A stretch of DNA of 20,194 nt from Chlorokybus atmophyticus (lineage: Eukaryota; Plantae; Mesostigma and Chlorokybus algae): NCBI GenBank assembly GCA_009103225.1, contig RHPI01002836.1, positions 375,590 through 395,783 of the forward strand. The letters are read 5' to 3'. This document shows, one piece after another, positions 1 to 20,194 of the stretch. Below the pieces are notes generated by a model, which was given only the letters and a program-made list of their open reading frames with translations, did no database searches and had not been told where the DNA came from. Numbering within the stretch: the first letter of the stretch is position 1; the number at the start of each line of letters is the position of its first letter. The position numbers and the translations under genes were made by a program.

Positions 1-414
1 GGTTGGGGGATGACATGCCCGCGCATGGGAATCGTATCTCATGGCTGTGCGCAGATTGACCATATGCTCTCAAGGGGACATCGCGTATGCTATTTACACT
101 TACAAGGTGGCACGTTTCTACTACATGTCAAGACCTCAACACACAACAAGTCAAGACTTACTGAACGAACTGGGTGCCGTCGGCAGCTGATAGCCTAAGT
201 GCAAGTTGTCTAGGTTGATGTCCTTATACGGACAGATCTTGGCGTGTTTGCCACCTTGGGCGGGCACTTCCTTGCCCGTAGCTGCTCGACACTTGATGCA
301 CGTTTTGGTTCCGCCTTTGCCTCCTTGACGCGATTTTTTGGTCTTGCGCATGGGCCCGATGGAGGGGACGTGCATGGGATGATATAAGGGATTCGCTACC
401 ATGGGCGGCGCATG

Positions 415-490
415 TGGATAAGGCACATATTAATAACGCGCGTGTGGATAAGGCGCCTGTAGATAAGGCGCATGTGGATAAGGCCAGCAG
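415..490 (-). repeat. Coding mini-repeat (PYPHA-like units) in the transposase C-terminus
   Basis: About 4 copies of gataaggc/gtggataaggc on +; translation WPYPHAPYLQAPYPHARY*YVPYPHAPP. Confidence 0.7.
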
Positions 491-3400
491 GCTGGGTGTA
501 CATGAGGGTTCGATGCATGCATGGCTTGCAATGGTCGCCAATAAGTTGTCGGAGCTGCCGCATTGTTGTTGATGCGTGGCTGCTGAGTTGTTGAGCTGGA
601 CAATAGAACCGGTTGAAGCACAGGCATAGTGGCTTCCGCTGTTCTAGGAGGGAGCGTTGTCCGATGCTCCGCCGCCGCCGCGGGTTGTGTCGATGAGGTA
701 GTCCGTGTCTCTGGTGGAGGATGTGCTGACAAGCGTTGTGGTGTTGTAGCATTGGAGCGTACTGCCAGGTGCCCGTCCCCGCCAGCTCCAGGTGTCTCGA
801 CGTGAGCAGCCTGCATTGCCGTCACATGAATTTGCGTGACAATAGTAGCCAGGTGTGCTTTCACAATCTGCTTTTCATACTCTTGCAGTAGTTTAGCTAT
901 TTTGAGGTACAGCACTCCATCGTGTCCTATAGCCTGATGCGCGTGCGTACGCGCATTCCATTCATATGCCATCCGCTTGAAATCGGTAAATTTATTTTTT
1001 GTAAATTCTCCATGTAATTCTTGGAACAAACGCTGCTCAGCTGGGGTGCGCACGGGTTGAACTAGCTTTAATGGTTTCAATGCACGCCGTGGTAGCTTAC
1101 GATGCGGCGTTTTACGTTTGCCACACACCTGGGAGGTTGATGCAGTCACTGGCGTTGTGCTACGTGGAAAGTGCAGCTTGAGTTGGCGGCGTACGGCAAC
1201 CACGCTCGACGCACTTGCTAGAGTAGCCGTCGATGGTAGTCGCGAAGCTGGGCTCAATTCCATAGCGTTGTGCGTGCGTGTGGCTCGTGGAGACGACATC
1301 AGCATTGCAGGTTGCTGCTGCCATTCATTAGAGACACGCGTCGAACGTGACTGCTGAGGTACATGCGAGCGAAACGGAGACAACGAAGCAACTTCATGCG
1401 TCAACGACTCAGTGTCCTCCAAGTTGTTATTGAGCTCCGTGCGGCACGAAGCATCACCCCCGTTGCCGTCATGCGGCACTGGGCGTTGTTCACTTGCTTC
1501 GAGGGGGCTTGTTTGCATTGGGCTGCTCGGCGAAGGGTTTGACGCATGTTCATTCGCCGGTGATGCGTTGGCTTCTTCTTCAAGACCATCATCGGTATCG
1601 TCATGAACAGTGGCTTCACCTTCACATGTTGGAAGCTCCGCATCATCGTCTTGGGCAAAGAAGGCCTCCTTCAATTCCGTTGGCACGAAATCTATACCAA
1701 ATTTTTCTGTCGCATCATACCTTTCGTGATCACGAGGACATACACATGGTGTTATCAACCCCTTGCTCAACTCACCTTCAGATATTTGCGGCGTGTCCTG
1801 GATCTGAAAAGGCACCTTCCAGCCATACCGTTTGTGGAGCTCGTTGATGTAATTCATGTCCTATCATGCGTCGCTTAAACAGCCGGAACCAACCACTATA
1901 AAAACAAGCATAATATCCCAAAGCACTCTACAACGTACCTGAAAGTCATACACGCCATAGAATGGCTCACCTGCATTGCGCGTTGCTGAATTAATGTTGT
2001 GGCGTGTGATGAAATCAGAAAAGAGCATGCTTGCTTTGGCCGCGCTGTTGTTGCTGCCTTGCAGCACGCGAGCCACCAACTTGTGGAAGCCCTCGAGGGC
2101 GTTGGTGCCCCGCGCGCACAGCCAATGTGGCATGCAACCAGGTTTTGCAATGTTTGTGTACAGCTCGACCCCGATAAGATCTGCAGCATGATCCCACATC
2201 ATATGCAATACCAACACACTATAGACCAGCTTATGTTGCATTGCATACCACTCAGCTTGCCGCATGCCACCTGACGGAGTGCTTGCTCGTGACAGTTATC
2301 TAGTTCTGCTGTCCAAATGATGTTGCCTGAGTCGATGTCGACACGCTCGCGCCATTTATCAGCGAATTGCTGCAAAGTAGCATGAACCTCATTGCATTGT
2401 CCAATGCGCCGAGGCAGTTTGGTGCGCCGCGTTCCCAACTGCTCGTCAACTTTTTGTTGGCTCCAACCCTGATAAGTACGACATTGCATAAGTATACGGT
2501 CTGTGCGTGTTGGCTTATGTGCGTGCGTGCGTGTCAGCATATTGAGTTCGCGGACATGTCATCCCACCCTCCCACCCTCCGGCCACGAGCCAGCTCCACT
2601 TCACCACTACCTCTCCCCTCTCAACATGCCGTTGCCCCNCCCCCTTCTCGCCCCTTGCGTGCATGCGTGCGTATGAGTGTATGTGGTGCGCGTGTGTGAC
2701 AGTGTGTATCACTTACCAACGAAACAAGATGCTTGGCTTGAAACAACGCCTTGTCGTCGGATGTGTAGATTGCCGCGGACAACTCCTTCGCAAAGCGATC
2801 TTAATACAGCCACAACACAAGTGATTATTGCCATAATGCATAAACTCAGATCATATTGCGTTGACAATGATTATATGCATTAGCGGCCTCAACTCATTTA
2901 CCATTCAATGCGGAGGAGTCTGGAATGCAACGCAAGTAGCGCTGCATTAAGTGAAAGGCGTCTTGTAACACCATGTCCTTGTTCACTTGAAAGGCATCCG
3001 CCAATGCCGTGTCCATGCCCAAAGCATTGTCGCAATAAATGGCCTGTAAAGTCTGCAACGACAACATATTGCTACTCACATGTAAATTTTTAAGCCTCAC
3101 AGTTGCATAGGTACAAACCTCCGCAAGCTTGCGCCCGCCACCGACATCGCGCTCAGCTACTTTGCGCAACTCGTGTGAGACGGCATGAAGCGACGTGTTT
3201 GGGACGAAGTAATATGCCACGACTTGCTTTCTTTCATTGTATATCGTCAATATGCTTCCGCCACCTAGAGCACAATGTCACAGCATGAGAGTGATGTACC
3301 GTTATGATGATGATTAATAAGAATGAACCATAAATCAGCATTGGCATGCGTGTCGATGTGTATAAGTGCGAGTGTGCATGTGCACGTGCACGCGCATACA

Positions 3401-4875
3401 TTACTATATGTGCGCGAGTTCATGCTCAAACGGTTGACACGTATTGCCACATGTGCAAGCATGTAGAGTATGCTTGCGCGTGCATGTGTACACGTGCGTG
3501 ATTGCGTGTACACACTGCACGTGTGCACTTGCGCACCTTGCGTTTGTCTTTGCGGATTTGCTTGGGGATTTTGAACGAATGGTCAATGGCGATGATGCGA
3601 CCAACGGACAGGCTCAACCGCCGGTTCTGCTCTTGCATACGCTTTTCTCCTTCGCGCATGTACAGGTCGGAGAAGTAGGCATCTCCAGGCACATATCCTA
3701 TAGAGATATCAATGTTCAATTCCGCAACCACGATGATGAGCAACAACTTACACTGCATGCATGCATGCAATCGCACTTACCCGAGTAGCCGTCTTTGTCA
3801 CAGAAGTCGCCAAAGTCTGGTATCGCGGCAGCCGCTGCTTGTGAGACACCTAGCATCCCTAGCAATCTCGTCTTTGGAATCTTCTGCGCATGGTCTTCAA
3901 CAAATGCCGCCGTGAAGAGCTTACGCGTGCTAATGTAGCGATGATGATGTAACTCCTGGGATAGGCGCACAAAGAGACTCAGTCAATACGTGAATTGACA
4001 TTGGTCAACACGTGTGATTGCGCATGCGTCGCAATATGCGTGAACTACCTCGAGCATGTCGGAAAAGTCCATAAAACTCTGATTGTTCACCACGTTACGC
4101 CGCAACATGATCTTAATGGCCTCCTCGACACCATGCCGTTGCGTGAGCACGTAGGGGAAGGCCTCTTGCACACTTACAGGGAGCTGCGCCATGATTTTGG
4201 CATCATAACCAGCAAATGTATGCCCGGTACCGTCTAGTATCAACCATAGCGTGGAGACACGCAATGTTAGAGTGCGAAAGGTCATCTCGCGTAACAAGCT
4301 TGATAACGTTCAATACTGAGTGTACTGACATAATACCTTTGCAGCTTTTGCACTTGTAGTCATAACTGTATAGCCAACAAGTCGCGGACAATGTGGTAAC
4401 CGGCCGCACACTCCCACGCCAACTATCACTGTACAGGGGCTTGTCACAGTACGGGCATGAAATCTTCTTCACCTTGTCCGAGAAGAAGATGTGCGGCGCC
4501 CAAAATGTCACCTAAGTCACCGTTAATATGAGCGCGGTACATCACAAGTGTTGCATGCAACTGTCAGCATGCAACTGTCACATGTTTATACCATTGTCCC
4601 GCGCGGAATCTGATATGCGCACAACTTGAGTGCGCCCAACATCAAGCCTGAGGGGACTGGTAATGTGAAATCAGGCCATACATCTATGTCAACCGGTGGG
4701 CATGCCCACTCCCCTTTATCGGCCTGCCAAGTTGCTTGTGGCAATAAAGGCTTTATGCCACGCTTCTCTTCTTCCACCGTGACCGTCTTGCGCGTGCGCC
4801 AAAGACACCAATTCAACACATACTTCTCCGCGGCTGAGGCTTCCTTTAATGAAGCGTCTGTAGCGATTAATGATA

Positions 4876-5405
<530 letters not shown>

Positions 5406-5560
5406 NNNNNNNNNNNNNNNNNNNNNNNNNNNNNNNNNNNNNNNNNNNNNNNNNNNNNNNNNNNNNNNNNNNNNNNNNNNNNNNNNNNNNNNNNNNNNNN
5501 NNNNNNNNNNNNNNNNNNNNNNNNNNNNNNNNNNNNNNNNNNNGGGGGGGGGGGGGGGGG
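5406..5560. other. Assembly gap (N 5406-5543) followed by G17
   Basis: Seen directly. Confidence 0.98.
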
Positions 5561-5673
5561 AGCGCCCAGTCATACATACCTGCTGCTCGGCCGCTCGGCC
5601 GCCGCTGCCTCTGCCGCCTCCCCTGCCGCTGGCCGCTGAGGGTAGGCAGGCCGAGTAGCTGTTAAACGGAATG

Positions 5674-5711
5674 TGGCGTGTCGCACGATCCGGGGGGACA
5701 ACTCAGGGACG
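5674..5711 (+). promoter_or_regulatory. Conserved 38-bp block upstream of the transposase 5' exon
   Basis: TGGCGTGTCGCACGATCCGGGGGGACAACTCAGGGACG matches the reverse complement of 7865-7902 at 36/38 positions. Function is inferred. Confidence 0.55.
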
Positions 5712-6262
5712 AAACAGTTGTTTACAGATGGCGTTTGATTTTTGTGTTTGCAGACAACAGCTGCCACCTTGTTAGAAAACGTTTGCCATCTCGAGGGGCA
5801 AGCTGTTGTCAATACTTTGCCAACCACGCCAAGTTATTGGCATAATTCATCACATTACAACGCAGATGGTGCATTTACAATGTTGTCAAATGTTTGCCAA
5901 CACGAAGCCTTTATTGCTTGTAATTTGCATGTTTCAACGCTGATGTGAAACATGTTATTGTCGTTATTGTTGGTAAATGTTCGCCAACACGCAATTTCAT
6001 GTTATCAATTGCGGATGCGCGCGTTGATAATATGATACGGCTTATGGAAGTGTTGTGCTACTTACATGCGCATATATCCGTAATCCCATACCCCAAGTAT
6101 ATCTCAAGTACATGGTGGTTCCAGGGGTTTTCTTTCTAGTTATTCAAGCGTTGCACCACTCGACGACGACGTGTTGGGAACATTTTGCCAACTGCTAGTA
6201 CTCGGCGCGCAATGAGCCGCTTCCGGCCACTGCATTTTGCGCGTGAGAAAAAGGCTACCATT

Positions 6263-6337
6263 GAAGTACCGCGGGTATCGAACGCACGACCTGTGGGTTA
6301 GAGAGCGGTGTAGTATCGACTACTGACTCAGACGCCA
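6263..6337 (-). ncRNA. tRNA-like Pol III unit (tRNA pseudogene or SINE-head-like), copy 1
   Basis: A-box-like TGAGTCAGTAG; B-box GTTCGATAC (6275-6283) within T-arm GTGCG-TTCGATA-CCCGC; TAACCCACAGGTC resembles the plant initiator tRNA-Met 3' of the anticodon (recalled, not searched); T5 terminator at 6248-6252; upstream TTTATA. Acceptor stem pairs poorly. Confidence 0.65.
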
Positions 6338-6513
6338 TCAGCTCCTATAAAGTACATATCCTCAATGATGCGCACAAGTACACACAACAGCCGCATACAA
6401 GCACAGGGTCTATGCCTATACTCATGTCAAAACGTGCTGATGGCCGAAAGTAATACTTGTGTTGATGTAATGCGATTTGTAGCCAGTGGCTGCTAGGTAG
6501 GCCTACGTTCTGC

Positions 6514-6565
6514 CCCCGCGAAGAGCATGCTGTTTCTCCTTCGCCGTCTTATGCTCATAGCGGGG
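6514..6565 (-). other. Stem-loop, homologous in position and closing sequence to 6956-7019
   Basis: CCCCGC(6514-6519)/GCGGGG(6560-6565) and GAGCAT(6523-6528)/ATGCTC(6551-6556) pair. Confidence 0.5.
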
Positions 6566-6654
6566 TAATGCTATTGGCGCTCTAAGAGCATAATACTCTC
6601 GTAGATGTCCATCGCATGTGTATCAACGTAAATGCAGATGTAAATGCATTTGTA

Positions 6655-6812
6655 CATGCATATCGACATACATCCATGTATCAGTATGTATGCATATATA
6701 TACATATATATCTGTGTATATATATATATGTATATACATATATATATATAAATGTATCTATATACGCTATATATATACATATGTATGTATGTACGCTATA
6801 TATATATATACA
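6655..6812. repeat. Degenerate (TA)n/(TATG)n low-complexity tract at the centre of the inverted duplication
   Basis: Seen directly. Confidence 0.85.
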
Positions 6813-6955
6813 TTGGTATTGTGTGCGTGTGTGGCCGATAAGCATATAACTTGAAAATAGTGTGCATCCATGTCTTCAATTGTGCACGTTATTTTAGACT
6901 AATGACTGCCGTTTCCGTTTCCATGTGTACCGGTAATGCTTTTAGTGCCGTATCT

Positions 6956-7019
6956 ACCCCGTCAGAGTCTCCCGGGCGCCTTTATTTGGCGCATAGCGCT
7001 CGGCCCAACTTTTGGGGGT
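6956..7019 (+). other. Stem-loop, copy 2
   Basis: ACCCC/GGGGT closing stem, AGAGT/ACTTT inner stem, GCGCC/GGCGC apical stem. Flanked by TACCCCG...GGGGG..GAACG as in copy 1. Confidence 0.5.
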
Positions 7020-7085
7020 GAACGGTATGTGCTTTGGTAGCGCAAAGTGAACATGATACTGTATTGAACCATTATTGCAAGTATG

Positions 7086-7157
7086 TTCTTCTTAGCTCAG
7101 CCGGATAGCGCGTCGCTTGACTCTAACAGATCGTGCGATCAAAACCCGCGATGCTCT
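7086..7157 (+). ncRNA. tRNA-like Pol III unit, copy 2
   Basis: A-box TAGCTCAGCCGG (from 7093); B-box-like GATCAAAAC (7137-7145) in the same GTGCG/CCCGC arm as copy 1; shared CTCTAAC; T4 at 7178-7181. Confidence 0.6.
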
Positions 7158-7864
7158 CGTGGAAGTAGCTTAGTAGCTTTTCTCTTTGCTGCTGCAAAAT
7201 GCAGTGGCCGAAATTGTCACTGCGCGCCGAGCTTGTAGTTGGCAAAATTTTCCCAACACGTCGCGTGCGGCACACAACAACGCTACCGTATGCGTGATAA
7301 TGTTGCGTGAAGGTCCACTTGTCAACAGCAATAACAGCAACAATCACCCTAGCACATTGTGTGACAAGCATCATAGTTAGAAACAATAACAATTGGTGTG
7401 TTACACGCAAGTTTAATTAGCTAAGTAAAATCACGCGGTAGGATCAGTTCTGTGTACCATCAAAAGTATCAAAATACTTCAAGTAAATAAGACGCTGCGA
7501 TCACATTGTTTAAAAAGCTTCACAACACGCAAGTGTAACATTCAACCACGAGCACACAATATGTATACCAACAGGAAATGATGCAGATGTGAAATGTTTG
7601 ACAACACATACGGTGTGTAGTTTGAAAATGGAAAAAACATGAAAAACAATACGGTCAAGATGGCAAAGGTTTCCCAACACGCAGTATGTGTTGTTTCGAT
7701 AACAGACGAATCATGTCAAGATTGAAAACAACAGGTGTACATCTAGTTGTTTCCAATCTCGTTTGATTTACAGATTATTCTGATTAAATGATGGTGTAGC
7801 TTACCGAGTTTCAATTTTTGTTGTTTGTAGATTGAAAGAATATTTGTGATTTCCGAGACAACTC

Positions 7865-7902
7865 CGTCCATGAGTTGTCCCCCCGGATCGCGCGACACGC
7901 CA
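7865..7902 (-). promoter_or_regulatory. Second, inverted copy of the 38-bp block
   Basis: 36/38 identical to 5674-5711 in reverse complement. Confidence 0.55.
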
Positions 7903-7947
7903 TGTGCGCAATGTCTACTCAGTATAGTTGTAGCAATCGTTAAATAC

Positions 7948-8047
7948 ATGGATTTCATTTACAACATCGAGCGCCTATTACAAACTCAAAGTAGTAAATC
8001 GGCGGTCAGGATAGCTCAAAGTAGCTCAAGGATTAGGTCGATCGACG
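7948..8047 (+). CDS. Possible orphan first exon (MDFIYNIERLLQTQSS...SID)
   Basis: ATG at 7948 and strong donor G|GTAAGA at 8048, in the position mirroring the transposase 5' exon. No downstream exon recognised. Confidence 0.3.
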
Positions 8048-8484
8048 GTAAGAAATAACTCAGCGACAGTTGCTCTGAGTTATCGCTGAGCGTCCGTTCA
8101 GTCCCGAACAGTGCCGCTGCCTCCTAATATGGCTCGAATATAATACGGGTATTTTACTTTGCATGTTGTAGCTTAATACGGGCAATACGCTAAATTCACC
8201 TATTGACATGACATGTTTTAGGGAGTTATAACGTAGTAAAGCGGTTTATTACAATGAAAACATAATGGTTATACGACAGCCGCACGTCTTCGAGTCGTAC
8301 GCCGCGGATCAGGGGCCCTAACATGCAGCGCAAGCCACTTTGGGGTCTCACATTCACCCTGATCGTTAACGTTGAAACCATAATACTAAATTCGCGTATA
8401 AGCGCGCATTGAGTACCGCCCGCGACAGATACGGGTATTATACCGTATGCAAGTTCCGGCTTAGAAGTATCGTGCAACTATGAT

Positions 8485-8635
8485 TATAAAGGACCATAAT
8501 TGGTTCGATTCGTACCGGTTCATGACCGGGAGCAGCCTTGATCCGGGTCATGGGGACCAAGCGTGACGGTTACGTAACTTTTGCGCCAGCTCCTGTCCCC
8601 GCGTTCGGACCAAGGCGAGAAAAAAAATCCGTGTG
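8485..8635. mobile_element. Right end of a CACA-terminated (CACTA/EnSpm-like) element; left end not found
   Basis: Ends AAAAAATCCGTGTG, compared with AAAAATCTCGTGTG at 18687. GTCCCCGCGTTCGGACCAAGGCG closely matches 18572-18595. GGACCA motifs present. Confidence 0.6.
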
Positions 8636-8739
8636 TATACTATAACCACTAGTACACTAAGGACTTAGCCATTTCAAGCCGACCGAACTTGTCCATAATA
8701 TGCACTCAACAGTGCAACCATGCAAGCCAACTTCTAACA
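8636..8739 (-). mobile_element. 5' fragment of an LTR (element F) inserted into Copia A reverse transcriptase
   Basis: The RT frame breaks after IFECRVLSET into TGTTAGAAG (8739). Contains TTCGGTCGGCTTG, similar to the motif in the other LTRs. Cut at 8635 by the CACA end. Confidence 0.5.
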
Positions 8740-11258
8740 GTCTCGCTCAAGACTCTGCACTCGAATATAGCTTGCAGCTGAGTCTTCACTCGCTGCACCC
8801 CTGACATTCCTGACGCTGCAATCAGAATGTCGTCCACGTACACAAACAATCACACTTGCTTGCTCTCGTGGTAGAACAGGCTTGGATCTGCCAAACTTGC
8901 TGGTAACCCCTGCTCCTGGAGCTCCTGGCACAGTCTTGCATGCCACACCCGTGGTGCCTGCTTCAAGCCATATAGTGCTTTCATCAATCTGCATGCTGTA
9001 CCAGGTGGCCCTTCCTGATACCCCTTTGGTTGCTGAATGTAGATTCTCTCTTGTAGCTCCCCATACAGAAACGCTGTTTTGACATCGAAGTGATGGAACT
9101 CCAAGTTGTCCGCTGACACAACAGCCACCATAGTTCTGAAGGTTGTCACCTTCCCCGCAGGTGCAAACACCTCATTGAAGTCCACTCCTTCTTGCTGCAA
9201 AAACCCCTTGGCAACCAATCTGGCCTTGTACCTCTCAATGTTGCCATTGCCGTCCCTTTTCACATTAAACACCCACTTGACAGGAATAGGCTTGACCCCT
9301 GCAGGTGGAACTTCAAGTTCCCATGTCGCATTGGCATGCAGTGAGGCTATCTCTTCATCCATTGCCTGACGCCAACTGTGTGCATTAGTCCTCCGGAATG
9401 CTTCTTCTGTATGGCTGGCTCCACACTGTGTGTTTCTGAGCTCGCCATATAGCCAAACTCCTTATGGAAACGTATAGGACCTTCATAATACGGTCAAGAT
9501 AATGCCCTCTGCTAGGCTGTTGGTTTTGCTGCTGCTGATGACTTTTCTCATCTCTGCGCGCGCAGCACTGTCCACTTTCTTAGGGGTGAGCTCCCTCTCC
9601 GAATCAGAACCACTGTCCACCAAATATGGAGCAGATGTTGCTGTACTGGACTCAGGCTGTTGCTGATCATCATTAATGCCTTCACCTTCAGATGAATCGC
9701 TGTCACTGATCTCCTGCAGCAGCACTCTATAAGCCTTGGAGTTAGGCTCATAACCAAGGAAGACACCTTTCTTGCTGACCAGGTCCAGCTTCTTCCTTTG
9801 CTGCTTGGGTGTCAACACATATGCAGTGCAGCCAAACACTCACTTGTTGCTGACATCTGGAGCTTTCGTGAAGAACAGCTCCCATGGCGTCTTTGCTTGA
9901 GCACGCGTTGGCGATCTGTTCTTATATAGTTGACTGTCGGAACCGCCTCTGCCCACCAGCAACTTTGCATTACTCAGCATGGCCCGAACTCTTTCCATCA
10001 AAGTCAGATTCAGCCTCTATGCTGCACCGTTTTGCTGCGGAGTGTATGGGGCTGTTGTTTGATGCACAATGCCTTGCGAAGACCAGAATGTAGATATCTC
10101 TTTGTTAAGGTACTCTCCTCCTCTGTCACTCCTGACTGTCTTCACAAGTTTGCTAGACACATTCTTCAACCACAGCACCACCTCCTTCACCACAGCAGGA
10201 ACATCTGACACGAGCTTCACAGAACGCACTAATGACAGCTTAAAGTACTTATTAAGGAAGGTGACAATGTAGGCTGCTCCCCCCTTCGATGGCTCTGCTA
10301 GCGGACCACACACATATGTGTGCACCAACTGTCCAACGTGCTCGCTGACACATTCAGACTTCTAGAAAGCTTGCCTATGCATCTTGGACAGCACGCATGG
10401 CTCGCACAACACACCTCTGGACTGCTTGATCTGCGCCTTGGTCACATTGATGCCACCAACCCAATCTTCTGCCACCAGACGATGAAGGTTGTCATACCCA
10501 AGGTGTCCAAACCTTCGATGTCAAAGTTCAGCTGTCTCAGGAACTGTCGCCACCAATGCCTTGTCAGTCTCTGCTTCTTCTATCACGTAAAGCCCGCCCT
10601 GTTGTTCTCTCGCGATGAGACACATCTTGCCATCAACACAAATACAGACCTCTGCTCCTTTTCCTAACAAATCAACTCCAGCCTTCGGTGGGAGAAGAGG
10701 CTAGCCTGTGCACGTGGGACATGAAGAACCTTCTTCAGCTCCACCCTGTACACACCTTCTCCCACCTTGCATTGAAGCACTGCCTGGCCTGTACCCGCTA
10801 CCTCCAGGCTCCCACCCAACACCTCCACAGTGCGTGGACTTGTCTGAACCTTGTAGTTTTGTAACAGTATTAGGAGTAAGATGCTGTGTAGCCAGACTCG
10901 GACACCCACCCATACCTCTGTCTTCCTGTGGATGATGTGAAGGCTATCGCACCTCCACCCCCTCCTTTTTGTCCACCCTGTGAATTGCCCTTTGCTGCCT
11001 TCAGCTGCTGGCAATCACTCCTCCAGTGTCCAACTTGGTCGCAATGAAAGCACTTTCCCTTGAAAGGCTTCTTGTGCTTCTTCTGATCTCCACCCAGCTC
11101 CTCCAGGCGACTGCGCTCGAGCAGCGAACGCACTAAACTCTCCATCAGCCTCGTTGCCCTTGATCCTTGATTCTGCCTTCAACAGGATTGGCACAATCTA
11201 TTTGAGGGTCAAATTCTGAGTGGTACTGATACCCTCCAGCATGATCACAACAATTTCA
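8740..11258 (-). pseudogene. pol: Ty1/copia element A: gag C-terminus, protease, integrase and RT (degenerate)
   Basis: Zinc knuckle CFHCDQVGHWRSDC; VLHVP protease tail; integrase VHTYVCGP, RSDRGGEY, YTPQQNG (first D altered to Y); FGCTAYV..GVFLGY; RT RYKARLVAKG, DVKTAFL, ALYGLKQAPRVW, YVDD (8829-8840). Multiple stops and frameshifts. Confidence 0.93.
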
Positions 11259-11633: not shown

Positions 11634-12044
11634 TCAAGCATTCGCTCCAACTTCAATGCCAAGTCCTTCACAGCATGTCTTGAACTTTGCAGCAGACAAT
11701 GCCTTGGTCATGAAGTCCGCCAGCATGTCTTCAGTCCTGCAGTAACTGAACTCCAACTCTCCTCTCGCCACTCTGTCTCTCACAAAGTGATTATGCACAT
11801 CAATGTGCTTGCTCCTTGCTGAGAGGATTGGGTTCTTCAGCAAATTCACAGCTCCCTGATTGTCAGAGTTGATCTTCATGCTCTCCAGAGGGTGTCCAAG
11901 ATCTGCCATCAGTTTTTTGAGCCAAAGTGCTTCCTTTGCAGCTGAAGCCGATGCCATGTACTCTGCTTCTGTAGTGGATGCAGCCACAGTAGGCTGTAAC
12001 TTGCTGTTCCAGCAGATCACACCACCACCAAGCTTGCACACATA
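11634..12044 (-). CDS. pol: Copia element B RNase H (C-terminal pol fragment)
   Basis: WNSKLQPTVAASTTEAEY, SDNQGA, SKHIDV, MLADFMTKAL. Open to a natural stop; interrupted at 12044 by LTR C. Confidence 0.93.
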   Translation of the reverse strand, partial: YVCKLGGGVICWNSKLQPTVAASTTEAEYMASASAAKEALWLKKLMADLGHPLESMKINSDNQGAVNLLKNPILSARSKHIDVHNHFVRDRVARGELEFSYCRTEDMLADFMTKALSAAKFKTCCEGLGIEVGANA

Positions 12045-12460
12045 TGTTGACATACACACGTGCAAGTGACACGCCACTAACATCAACACAAGAGCATGAC
12101 TGCTACTGCCATTAATGCCATACAAGTCCAGGGGTTTTATACCCCGTCAGTTTCTACACACGTCTACATTTGCAAGCACCGCGTGCACAATACTTAGCCT
12201 TTCAACGCGCTTTAAGTTGCGCTGTTTAGCTCACGACCAGAGGTTTTCAACAAGCTAAGCCACACCTGCCTAGCTTACGTATCCACAAAGCTACGCGGTT
12301 TCTCCCAACGCTCTACTCAGCATCTGGTCCGGGGTCCATCCTGGCTCGACCATCTTGCCAAGTCCGGAGTCCACGTGCTCAGCCATACATTCGACTCTCG
12401 ACTCTTGTGTAGAGGGCAAGCTGACCAGATACAAGCATCACCCATGTGATACCTTCAACA
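12045..12460 (-). mobile_element. 3' LTR of copia element C (416 bp)
   Basis: TGTTGA...TCAACA termini; TATAAAA box near 12135-12141; PPT-like GCTGCCCACGTGGGAG at 12461-12476. Confidence 0.88.
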
Positions 12461-13444
12461 CTCCCACGTGGGCAGCTTGGTCTTCAACACCTCCAACATA
12501 TTTGCAATCCTTGCTTCTCTTCTTCTTCCGAACGATGGCATAGAAGCTCTTGACCTCCTCTTGCTCCAGCTCCTCCACGCTTCCCACCAACGCTTGAAAC
12601 TTGTTTGTAGAGAACATCTTGTCCTTCATAGCAACTCGGGCCCCTTGGTTGGCCTTCAACTTCTTGCCCTTGTCTCTGTGATGCTCTTGATGCACATGCT
12701 CCTTGCTAACCTTCACTTGCTGCACCTTGCTCGCCAGCGCTTCCTTGTAGCTGTTTGCAGCTCCCACGGGCTCCGAGCTCCTTGTGACAGCAACCTTCTG
12801 TGCCTCCTCCTTGTTGCCATGACCTTGTGGTGTCTTAAACGCTATCTTCTCGACCACCCTTGTCTTTGCAACAACCTTATGCGCACCGTCCTCCTCCACA
12901 TAGTAGAGTCCACCCATGTTGATGCCTACTACATGCGTGACACCGCCAAGCTCTATACGAGCCTTGTCCGCATCAAACACAGCCCTTGCACCGACTATCG
13001 TGGCTCTACGTACTGAGAACAAACTAGCACATGCACCTGGCACATACAGTACATCCCTAAGCACAACCTCCTTCACCATACACAGGGCTATTTACGCGCG
13101 GACCAGTCGTACGCGGTCCGCAGACCACGGCTGGTACGCTGTGGCGGACCAGTGCCGTGACTGGTCCGGCGTGACCGTACCACCGGTGGTCCTGTCGCGG
13201 AGCCGAACGGCATGGTCCCATAGACCGGACCAGGGCTAATCACGGGCCCCGCGGCCTGCGACCCAGTGCAGCACTGGTCAGCACGCGGCTTGAGCAGTAG
13301 GACAAGGGCTGGTCGCATACCCTGCGGCCTATAAGCCAAGGCACCACTGGTACAACAAGTGACAGTTGCTATGACCAGGTTTGGTTCGTACACCAACGTT
13401 GTCTTGCGACCTGACATGGCAAGTACCGCGCGTCCTTCTGTTCA

Positions 13445-18270
<4,826 letters not shown>

Positions 18271-19749
18271 TAGCTGTTAAAGCACAGTTGTTTCAATTGC
18301 TACCGGTTGAATTTTTACAAGTCCGGCTGCAGCCGGCCAATGTGTAAACTATCTCAAAGACGCGCACCAGCCATGGTTCGTAGGTGCGGACCATGGCTGG
18401 TGCGCGGCTCTTGTCACAGGCAACTAGGCTTGAAAAAACAAATCGGACCAAGGATGGTCCCTGCAAAGTACCATTCCCGGTCCGATTTACACCAGCTTTC
18501 AACCGGCACCAACCCTGGCTCGATTTTTGAGGGGACCGTGGGACAATTACGTACTGTTTGGACCAGCCCTGGTCCCCGCGTGCAGACCAAGGCGGGCGAC
18601 CCTGGTCCGGACCCCAAGCCGCCCGGGCAAGTTGGCCCTGGTCTGTACCCGCGGACCAACCCTGGTTTACGGGAAAAATCTCGTGTGATACAACCAACCT
18701 TGCACCTCAGATTTGCATCTCCCTTTGCAACAGCTTTCAGCATCTGCCGGTTCCCAAAATCCACCGTGATTGGCTCAGGTAAAGGAGTGAGGTTGGTGAG
18801 CTTGCTCCTGTCGCTTGTGAGATGCCTGTTCGCTCCCGTGTCCAGCACCCACCCAGGATACTCCGCTCCCTCATCCAATGCATGGAAAGCAACCGCTCGA
18901 TGCTCACCATCAGCCTTCTTCAACTTGGGACACTTCATCTTGATGTGACCACGCTCCCCGCATTGCCAACACTCCACGTTGATGCCTCGAACGCCCTTCC
19001 TCACATGATGCTTCGATGATGACGTGAATGCCATAGCACCTCCAGGTGCTCCCTCCCCATCATCGTCCTCCTTCCTCGAGCGCTGCTCTTCTTGAAGAAG
19101 CATTGGTGTCACCCCATCCATTGACAAGTCCTCCTTCCCAGACTCCAAGATAGTGACAACCACCATGTACTCTTTGGGCAAACCTTAGAGCACAGCCCAC
19201 ACCACCTCAACTTCCTTGAGCTCGTGGCCAACACCCAGCAAGTCCCTCCACAACGCCTTCGCTCGCGCCATGAACTTAACAATGGGCTCCCCGCTCTCCT
19301 TGCGCAATGAGTTGAGCTCCTGCCTGAGCAACAGTCTCCTCGCCATGTTGCGCGACTTGAAGTGGCTATCCAACCTCGTCCAAAGCTCCTGTGCACTCTT
19401 GCACTCCTTTACTAGCACCAGGTGATGATCAGCCATGTGCAAACTTATCAAAGACAAAGCTTTTCTCTCCCTTGTTTTGCCCAGACACTCGCTTCGCCTA
19501 CAGGGACTGCCTCCGCTGGATCCACATACTTCCACAGCTCCTTGTGGGCCAGTAGTAGCTCCATCTTCACGCTCCATATGTTGTAGTTGTCAACGTCCAG
19601 TGGTTCAATTGTGAACTTCAAGCCGTTCATGCTTGTGGCCGTGGTTGCCCCTCTGCTACTTGCAGACTTTACAACCAGCATAGTCTGCATCACAGTAGCC
19701 CTGCAGTTCTGTACTGCCCTGGCCATACTTGATGCCCACTGCCACTGTT

Positions 19750-20194
19750 TGTTGAAGATATTCTTGTATCCAGTCAGCTTGCCCTGTGGATAAGAATAGC
19801 CGCGAGAAGATTCAGGCGCGAGAAGGTGCCAGTCGAGAAAGGTCCAGGCGAGGACTTCAGTCGAGAAGGTTCCAGGCGCGGAGTCGAGTCCGGAGTCTGG
19901 AGACTTCCAGGCGCTGTAGAAGAAACGTTGTAGCTCGGTGGTTACTTGGCTAACTGGCACGTATGGCGGCTTGTTGGAAAGCTCTTGAAAGTAGCTACGT
20001 TGTGCAACTTAGAGCGCAGGAGTTGGTTGAGTGTAGAAGTCGTGGTGGCTTTTAAAGTAGACATGTGCAGAATTGGCGGGTATAAAAGCCCGCGATATAA
20101 CTTGTTGTAATCCTTAGAAAGCCTTTTGGATCAGCCTTGTGTGTATGCTCTGGTAGAGTGTGTGTACTTGTGCTTGCACCAACTCCATGCAACT
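19750..20194 (+). mobile_element. LTR (element E), plus strand, related to LTR C; runs off the window
   Basis: Starts TGTTGAAG. Colinear blocks shared with LTR C: CTTGTATC..GTCAGCTTGCCCT, GCTTGTTG.AA, GCAACTTA.AGCGC, GTAGAC.TGTG.AGAA..G.CGG.GTATAAAA. U3 has repeated CGAGAAG..CCAGGCG units (19803-19913). Confidence 0.85.

Follow-up and report, generated by a model that had tools for sequence, protein, structure and literature searches.

The two tRNA-like sequences that lie divergently at the ends of the interval 6248-7181 of the analysed DNA (a stretch of 20,194 nucleotides from Chlorokybus atmophyticus, hereafter the window) are best explained as mirror copies of one tRNA-derived sequence, carried as passenger relics in the arms of a palindromic, non-coding element that is bounded by terminal inverted repeats (TIRs). 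We give this reading a probability of roughly 55%. The units are not tRNA genes, and they are not halves of one tRNA split by the neighbouring Dada element. The element that carries them (referred to as the module; Table 1) is, judging from the sequence of the one copy examined, most likely a non-autonomous cut-and-paste DNA transposon of the foldback type. An earlier note on this DNA had described the two stretches as divergent Pol III units next to a transposase of a tRNA/snRNA-targeting lineage; both stretches were found to be present in that arrangement.

Table 1. Positions of the tRNA-derived units, the other parts of the module and the neighbouring gene within the window
Feature	Positions	Strand	Remarks
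Left TIR	5675-5711 (5674-5711 as reported by the tool, 38 nt)	+	95% complementary to 7865-7902
Right TIR	7865-7901	-	Mirror homology ends here
Candidate 4-bp target site duplication, ATGT	5671-5674 and 7902-7905		Needs the repeat to start at GGCGTG (5675); weak, being 4 bp with a free boundary
22-nt palindromic motif (consensus TGTTGNCAAANNTTTGCCAACA), left arm	5770, 5804, 5881, 5968, 6172 (span 5770-6193)		
22-nt palindromic motif, right arm	7237, 7585, 7658; weak copy at 7506 (span 7237-7681)		
Conserved block downstream of unit 1	6165-6254	-	T5 run, then GC-rich hairpin, then one palindromic motif
Unit 1, decayed tRNA-derived sequence	6263-6345	-	Good T-arm; extra bases in the D-arm region
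Module centre	6346-7085		Non-coding; AT-rich TA/TGTA microsatellite at about 6660-6820
Unit 2, decayed tRNA-derived sequence	7086-7157	+	A box/D-arm of canonical form, starting with TAGCTC at 7093
Conserved block downstream of unit 2	7176-7265	+	Includes the T4 run 7178-7181
Intron-containing Dada-type transposase gene	151-4819	-	Not part of the module

The module was identified as an inverted repeat of 2,229 bp (5674-7902) with one tRNA-like unit in each arm and with its boundaries, the TIRs, lying outside both units. The arms of the TIR match at 36 of 38 positions and occur as two copies in the window, against an expectation of zero. No similarity between left and right was found in the outer flanks of the module. 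The earlier note had suggested checking where a 6-7-bp target site duplication falls relative to the units; none was present around the Dada coding region or at the module flanks, where the 4-bp ATGT is the only candidate. Each arm was found to consist of the 38-nt terminal repeat, four to five copies of the 22-nt motif and an inner block of approximately 170 bp, the latter comprising one motif copy, a GC-rich hairpin, an oligo-A/T run and the tRNA-derived unit. With up to three mismatches, the motif was identified at six sites, all of them within 5804-7679 (none being expected in the window), and ten of the eleven half-motif matches fall inside the module. No ORF of 100 aa or more occurs within 5666-8849. 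The module centre showed no significant mirror homology and its folds were unremarkable, while Rfam miRNA matches within it were dismissed as low-complexity artefacts.

Comparison of the two arms showed that the units are homologous to each other, flanks on both sides included. The conserved blocks downstream of the units share 87% identity when gaps are excluded (HSP 6167-6294 / 7263-7126, E=1.4e-18). The hairpin within these blocks gave a fold z of -1.2 for the left copy and -1.9 for the right copy. The mirror homology as a whole is patchy, at 95% in the tips, approximately 70% in the motif patches and 74% over 142 nt of the inner block, with nothing elsewhere, a pattern suited to cis elements rather than to plain duplication. 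Furthermore, the arms differ in length by approximately 150 bp, and of the two copies only that of the right arm carries a tandem 8-bp duplication (7165-7180, read by eye). Conservation between the arms is higher in the inner block, including the T-arm, than in most of the arm. An inner element with its own termini (6167-7263) was considered, but it had no sharp boundary and no duplication and was kept as part of the module; a DIRS-like structure was also rejected, as the terminal repeat is present only twice and lacks an internal complementary copy. Three exact-pattern scans for copies of the module in viral contigs gave no matches, and eight loci from a metagenome scan, none of which possessed the T-arm or the motif, were regarded as chance matches. 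The termini (GGCGTG...) and the 22-nt palindrome had no match among the families tested.

The units were found to be oriented with their terminator sides toward the Dada gene and their A-box sides toward the module centre. An identical T-stem (GTGCG/CCCGC), with one C-C mismatch and 4/5 pairs, is shared by both, and each is followed by an oligo-T run within the distance of about 10-20 nt given in the earlier note, namely T5 (6252-6248, minus strand) 10 nt after the discriminator position of unit 1 and T4 (7178-7181) 20 nt after that of unit 2. The mismatched T-arm and the oligo-T are thus common to both units, but they do not amount to two independent observations, because the units mirror each other as copies in a single inverted repeat. 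Of the A and B boxes that had been ascribed to both units, B-box-like T-loops are present in each, with one mismatch to GGTTCRANNCC in unit 1 and about two (read by eye) in the mutated T-loop of unit 2, but a canonical A box is found in unit 2 only. There it reads TAGCTCAGCCGG, and the sole exact TAGCTCAG of the window is located here; in unit 1 the A-box region has three to four mismatches and extra bases. Unit 2 measures 44 nt from position 8 to position 53. The anticodon-loop region of the units has a possibly Lys(CUU)-like appearance.

The lack of a sound cloverleaf, already pointed out in the earlier note, was borne out by ARAGORN, Rfam and stem counts alike. ARAGORN identified no tRNA genes, and Rfam called no tRNA at the gathering threshold, nor at E<=10 in searches of 2.4 kb and 131 nt. 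Under relaxed settings ARAGORN called both units only once its thresholds were set to 80%, at which 13 further sites were called as well (15 calls per 20 kb). In unit 2 the acceptor is effectively without pairing (2/7), with 3/4 pairs in the D stem, 3/5 in the anticodon stem and 4/5 in the T stem, while unit 1 has 4/5 pairs in the T stem and at best 5/7 in the acceptor, three of these being wobbles. The folds of the units are no better than those of shuffled sequences (z=+0.7 and +0.6), and alignment of the two copies across the tRNA-like core contains 30 gap columns. A functional tRNA was ruled out on the basis of ARAGORN, Rfam, the broken stems and the fold z.

A tRNA signal above chance, weak but real, is nevertheless retained in the sequence of the units. 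Using BLAST, the best matches of unit 1 were on annotated phage tRNA-Phe T-arms and those of unit 2 on annotated phage tRNA-Arg and tRNA-Thr D-arms, whereas two control queries matched no annotated tRNA. Unit 1 was the top match of the window to a profile of 17 tRNAs (nhmmer, E=0.042), and both units could be aligned end to end with real tRNAs. A chance resemblance was rejected in view of the BLAST results against those of the controls, the rank in the profile HMM search and the alignments with real tRNAs. Unit 1 read on its reverse strand has no TGG start, and an interpretation as a PBS was rejected on that ground.

The neighbouring gene was found to be Dada-like at the motif level, as the earlier note had recognized. 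Its ORF pieces contain a CCCC zinc finger (4203-4511) and a C-terminal CCHC (151-426), along with the motifs AIDHSFK, IYCDN, QDAFHLMQRY and ARGTNALEGFH, which on visual comparison correspond to the D, D, DxxH and E blocks given in Dataset S1 of PMC3706591; the gene thus resembles Dada in these blocks and in both zinc fingers. DUF6729 was detected on it with an E-value of 4e-5, below the Pfam cut-off, and its ESM neighbours were eukaryotic hypothetical and transposase clusters, with MULE/IS256-type proteins further off. With the DDE exon as query, HMMER gave a single match, to an unrelated repeat protein, and the 475-aa C-terminal ORF gave none in a word-based search. A functional link cannot be read from the proximity of the units to this Dada-type transposase. 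For the right end of the module, a Dada junction of the U6-like or GCGCAA type was considered and dropped, Rfam giving no snRNA match.

Insertion at tRNA positions 8-13 (TAGCTC followed by AG) has been described for many Dada lineages (PMC8869645; PMC3706591), and short target sequences are known to be repeated at the ends of Dada elements (PMC3706591). The tRNA similarity of unit 2 begins exactly at TAGCTC, resembling the Dada target at positions 8-13, a coincidence that is not explained by the passenger reading. It is possible, though unlikely, that the units are tRNAs from position 8 onwards that were cut by Dada insertion, or a target mimic in the 5’ region of a Dada element, with the palindrome having formed later through inverted duplication. 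Such an origin would draw on the Dada motifs of the neighbouring gene, on the insertion preference and end repeats cited above, and on the start of the unit 2 similarity exactly at TAGCTCAG, the 7 nt upstream of which form 2/7 pairs with the 3’ acceptor strand; the 5/7 acceptor-like pairs of unit 1 argue against truncation at position 8. It is also at odds with the position of the units, as their A-box sides face the module centre and not the Dada gene, the nearest plausible exon of which ends approximately 1.4 kb from unit 1, with the left arm, the terminal repeat, a G-run, an assembly gap (N 5406-5543) and a 525-bp GT repeat in between. Comparison of the module with the remainder of the window by BLAST gave no similarity (the 3’ end of the Dada element being outside the window), neither the module nor its centre has a sequence or motif in common with 1-5673, from which the 22-nt motif is absent, and no tRNA or snRNA fragments were found in 1-4890 or at the module flanks. 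Described Dada elements possess no TIRs, having short subterminal inverted repeats and 6-7-bp duplications (PMC3706591), unlike the module with its long TIRs and lack of a 6-7-bp duplication; they are situated inside intact halves of small-RNA genes in the same orientation, whereas here the tRNA-like parts are mirrored, near full length and within a TIR module. The suggestion that the units are decayed target tRNAs therefore stands as regards decayed tRNA, but the term target is not supported, because the units lie inside a TIR module with their A-box sides toward its centre and with no 6-7-bp duplication or tRNA/snRNA flanks. Similarly, of the suggested element-borne tRNA mimic, the units do prove to be element-borne but not Dada-borne, belonging to a separate module with no sequence or motif in common with the part of the Dada gene region that lies in the window. 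Of a function as mimic, whether in restoring a Pol III promoter or as a targeting or decoy RNA, no sign was seen in the fold z values, the differing indels and the 8-bp duplication. We consider it highly improbable that the tRNA unit is a selected part of the cis partner or 5’ region of an algal Dada lineage, carrying a copy of the target from position 8. Such a copy, with working A and B boxes and a terminator, could attract TFIIIC or the transposase, or serve as a decoy or landing pad, and it would take further the known tendency of Dada termini to repeat short stretches of the target gene.

The arms may also be viewed as two members of an independent, dispersed family of tRNA-derived repeats (SINE-like, or a tRNA-like part with a palindrome) that came to lie head to head by chance, an improbable arrangement. 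A tRNA-related head with promoter boxes does open each arm and a well-conserved terminal sequence closes it, but the T5 and T4 runs after the tRNA part would halt Pol III ahead of the body, the ends of the arms are a GC-rich inverted repeat and have no A-rich or simple-repeat tail, no direct repeat was seen by eye around each arm separately, and the exact mirror symmetry with matching termini is more simply accounted for by one element. An origin of the units as SINE heads is likewise not supported, as T4 or T5 comes immediately behind the tRNA part and neither an A-rich or repeat tail nor a duplication around each copy was found; the argument that an oligo-T right after the tRNA-like part speaks against a normal SINE, made beforehand in the earlier note, holds. 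Local inverted segmental duplication of a tRNA-pseudogene locus, with no mobile element involved, is quite unlikely. It would be compatible with the single copy seen, with the repeat-rich and poorly assembled region (which includes the N gap) and with the lack of a convincing target duplication, but identity that peaks at the tips (95%) and is lowest between them, in arms differing by some 150 bp, does not reflect uniform decay, and 22-nt palindromes arrayed in the arms alone are what the subterminal repeats of transposons typically look like. Lastly, a perfect A box and a near-consensus B box are preserved at tRNA spacing in unit 2, the B box of unit 1 has a single mismatch, both units have a T-run at terminator distance and the T-arm is identical at 17 of 20 positions between the module arms. 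These features may suggest working Pol III units or TFIIIC sites under selection, as short non-coding RNAs or chromatin boundary sites. This is nonetheless very unlikely, with one box lost from each unit (the A box in unit 1, T54 in unit 2), differing indels, no fold signal and no covariation, and with a T-arm that is not significantly better conserved than the block around it.

In the preferred reading, that of a tRNA-derived passenger in a foldback-type transposon, the palindromic motifs would be where a dimeric transposase, provided in trans, docks. The tRNA piece would have been captured or adjoined before inverted duplication of the arm, and would then have decayed as a passenger by substitutions, indels and the 8-bp tandem duplication. 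The residual A and B boxes, as far as their sequence allows a prediction, could at most still bind TFIIIC, and any Pol III transcript would be expected to end at the T-run after approximately 85-100 nt, without a stable fold. The better conservation of the inner block could mean constraint and not passenger status.

Foldback and long-TIR MITE-like elements, and elements with subterminal motifs of the En/Spm and Ac/Ds types, are non-autonomous TIR transposons with subterminal repeat arrays. The module resembles these in its TIRs, its short subterminal motifs on both sides, its lack of coding capacity, its AT-rich centre and a possible short target site duplication, and differs from those known in the tRNA-derived segment that is present in each arm. 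With tRNA-derived SINEs it shares a tRNA-related head with A- and B-box-like motifs that opens a longer non-coding unit, but the T-run after the head, the lack of an A-rich or LINE-type tail and of a per-copy duplication, and the placement in the arms of one inverted repeat are unlike SINEs. The units also resemble tRNA pseudogenes in keeping tRNA geometry and arm motifs while losing stems and detector scores, yet they occur as two mirrored copies in a transposon-like structure and not as a stand-alone decayed gene. A further parallel is found in Cassandra, Helenus and Ajax (PMC10886601), which are non-autonomous elements with sequence derived from small-RNA genes, including Pol III boxes, in their terminal repeats; in these the repeats are direct LTRs, accompanied by PBS and PPT, and the Pol III transcript is the transposition intermediate. 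In contrast, the module is an inverted repeat of the DNA type, in which a Pol III transcript would have no obvious role in movement. No DNA-type element is known to require a Pol III unit.

The main value of these results is one of correction, as what had been taken for two Pol III units is one decayed tRNA-derived sequence present in both arms of the module. Should other copies of the module show that the tRNA-derived part is conserved, a new explanation would be called for. If the module were to prove the terminus of a Dada element of the green lineage, it would likewise matter more.

The divergent pair of tRNA-like units that an earlier note had described at the two ends of one stretch was recovered in the orientations listed in the table. 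As had been stated, the two units share the mismatched T-stem GTGCG/CCCGC, in which a single C-C mismatch leaves four of five pairs; the 20-nt T-arm pattern was found at only these two sites in the window, with none expected. An oligo-T run was likewise confirmed at 10-20 nt downstream, being T5 at 10 nt past unit 1 and T4 at 20 nt past unit 2. Regarding the internal promoter boxes, a B box with one mismatch was identified in unit 1, and unit 2 carries the only exact match to TAGCTCAG in the whole window, preceding its G53 equivalent by 44 nt, which is tRNA geometry. The A-box region of unit 1, however, is degenerate and contains additional bases that neither unit 2 nor real tRNAs have, so the earlier description holds except for the statement that both units have A boxes.

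The cloverleaf of both units had been judged unsound, and this was borne out by tRNA detection, stem pairing and folding. No tRNA was found for either unit by ARAGORN; with thresholds lowered to 80% both were called, together with 13 other sites in the 20 kb. Rfam gave no tRNA at the gathering threshold, nor even at E<=10, in 2.4 kb or in each unit alone (131 nt). In tRNA numbering, the pairs retained by unit 2 are two of seven in the acceptor, three of four in the D, three of five in the anticodon and four of five in the T stem, and the folds of the two units were no better than those of shuffled sequence (z=+0.7 and +0.6). With detectors empty, stems broken and folds like those of shuffles, the units were rejected as tRNAs.

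Both units are tRNA-derived, judging from sequence comparison. In a blastn search against 2.3 Gb of phage records, in which E-values were poor, positions 49-81 of unit 1 matched the T-arms of annotated tRNA-Phe and positions 2-26 of unit 2 the D-arms of annotated tRNA-Arg and tRNA-Thr, while two control queries of equal length from the same inverted-repeat module gave no tRNA match in these records. Using a sequence-only profile built from 17 annotated phage tRNAs, unit 1 was the top match in the 20-kb window (E=0.042), and in a MAFFT alignment with four real tRNAs each unit could be aligned over its full length. Among known sequences, tRNA pseudogenes are one of the closest kinds. In the trailer of unit 2, just 5' of the T-run, 8 bp are duplicated in tandem (GTAGCTTA followed by GTAGCTTT); missing from unit 1, this duplication is a sign of unconstrained decay.

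The tRNA-derived piece occurs twice because the arm of the module occurs twice, and the units are not independent of each other. A 38-nt repeat with 95% identity between the ends was found at the module tips, where the mirror homology stops exactly, the outer flanks being mutually unrelated. If the repeat is taken to start at GGCGTG, ATGT flanks both ends, a possible though weak candidate for a 4-bp target duplication. Each arm contains four to five copies of a 22-nt palindrome (consensus TGTTGNCAAANNTTTGCCAACA) that is essentially absent from the rest of the window, and these would be likely docking sites for a transposase. One arm is about 150 bp longer than the other, and their homology is patchy, at approximately 70% around palindrome copies and undetectable outside the tips, these patches and an inner block (74% over 142 nt, E=1e-18). 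Along the direction of the unit, this block consists of the tRNA-derived part, the T-run, a GC-rich hairpin and one palindrome copy, with its downstream 90 nt 87% identical (gaps excluded) as against 80% for the tRNA-like core with 30 gap columns. The outer stem of the hairpin (GCAGTG...) is kept in both arms, the sole difference preserving pairing (G-U versus G-C), while inner stem and loop are unlike; it appears to be a hairpin that the element conserves at the DNA or RNA level.

No ORF of at least 100 aa was found in the module. Its centre contains a 17-nt direct repeat, stem-loops whose folds do not surpass those of shuffled sequence (z=-0.8 and -0.3) and an AT-rich TA/TGTA microsatellite, in which sub-threshold Rfam microRNA matches (mir-297, mir-466 and others) were dismissed as low-complexity artefacts. 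The anatomy is that of a putative foldback-type TIR transposon of the non-autonomous kind, with arrays of binding sites in its subterminal regions; known non-autonomous TIR or foldback elements have the same architecture and are among the closest kinds.

Positions of the features in the window
Feature	Position	Strand	Remark
Transposase gene	~4819 to 151	minus	intron-split
GT repeat	region 4880-5560		~525 bp
Assembly gap (N)	5406-5543
Module	5674-7902		2,229-bp inverted repeat, units 1 and 2 in opposite arms
Hairpins	6208-6240; 7194-7226		directly past each T-run
Unit 1	~6263-6345	minus	one end of stretch 6248-7181
Centre stem-loops	6490-6615; 6900-7045
Centre direct repeat	6564-6580; 6932-6948		17 nt
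Centre microsatellite	6660-6820
Unit 2	7086-7157	plus	other end of stretch 6248-7181
Tandem duplication	7165-7180		unit 2 trailer
Copia-type gag/pol fragments	8706-9362; 11634-12125; 12438-13079; 18414-19960	minus
CT repeat	16560-18100		~1.5 kb, perfect dinucleotide

The neighbouring gene was accepted, at the level of motifs, as a Dada-type transposase. Its blocks AIDHSFK, IYCDN, QDAFHLMQRY and ARGTNALEGFH, a CCCC zinc finger and a C-terminal CCHC finger have their counterparts in the D, D, DxxH and E blocks and the two fingers of Dada transposases (Dataset S1, Kojima and Jurka, PMC3706591), and a weak match to DUF6729 was identified (E=4e-5). Feature-based neighbours were clusters of eukaryotic hypothetical proteins or transposases, MULE/IS256-type families lying at a greater distance, in agreement with the affinities reported for Dada; library searches for relatives found nothing. 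The gene termini and target gene lie beyond what the window shows.

No link between the module and this gene was found. The palindrome motif and module sequence are absent from 1-5673, and the reading of the units as Dada targets was not upheld, neither tRNA or snRNA fragments (in 1-4890 and at the module flanks) nor a 6-7-bp duplication at the flanks being found. Described Dada elements, also among the closest kinds, are without TIRs, have 6-7-bp duplications and split the target into two same-orientation halves (PMC3706591), none of which was seen in the module, whereas the neighbouring gene resembles Dada at motif level. Unit 1 turns its terminator side towards the gene and its A-box side away from it, with the left arm, terminal repeat, G-run, assembly gap and GT repeat in between; as the GT repeat runs into the gap, which is followed by the G-run, the join is not fully assembled. 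Positions 8-13 of tRNAs, TAGCTC then AG, are the insertion site of many Dada lineages (PMC8869645), and the tRNA similarity of unit 2 begins exactly at this TAGCTC, acceptor pairing being absent upstream. However, unit 1 keeps five of seven acceptor-like pairs and about 25 nt of upstream homology is common to both units, so the coincidence is a weak hint, and a Dada-linked origin or target mimic is considered unlikely.

Just as improbable is that the units belong to an independent family of tRNA-derived repeats and lie head to head; tRNA-derived SINEs are among the closest kinds, but here a terminator-like T-run follows each tRNA-derived part, and neither a SINE tail nor a duplication around each arm was found, which also argues against the earlier suggestion of SINE heads. 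A non-mobile local inverted duplication is slightly less probable again, and least probable are selected Pol III or TFIIIC sites. Surrounding repeats include a decaying Copia-type reverse-transcriptase fragment approximately 800 bp right of the module, further Copia-type fragments whose order misfits one collinear element, the copies therefore being nested or rearranged, and the CT repeat, in which GC skew and AT skew are both -1. All five readings hinge on other module copies in the Chlorokybus atmophyticus genome; scans of viral contigs gave no match, and one metagenome scan gave eight, all by chance, which were set aside.

The favoured reading, with a probability of roughly 0.55 and based on a single module copy, is that of a passenger relic of a tRNA-derived sequence, located in both arms of a TIR element of the non-autonomous kind. 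Cassandra, Helenus and Ajax (PMC10886601), also among the closest kinds, show that Pol III genes can be borne by non-autonomous elements; they differ in being small-RNA-bearing LTR elements that move through RNA. Any Pol III transcript from the units of the module would halt at the T-run.
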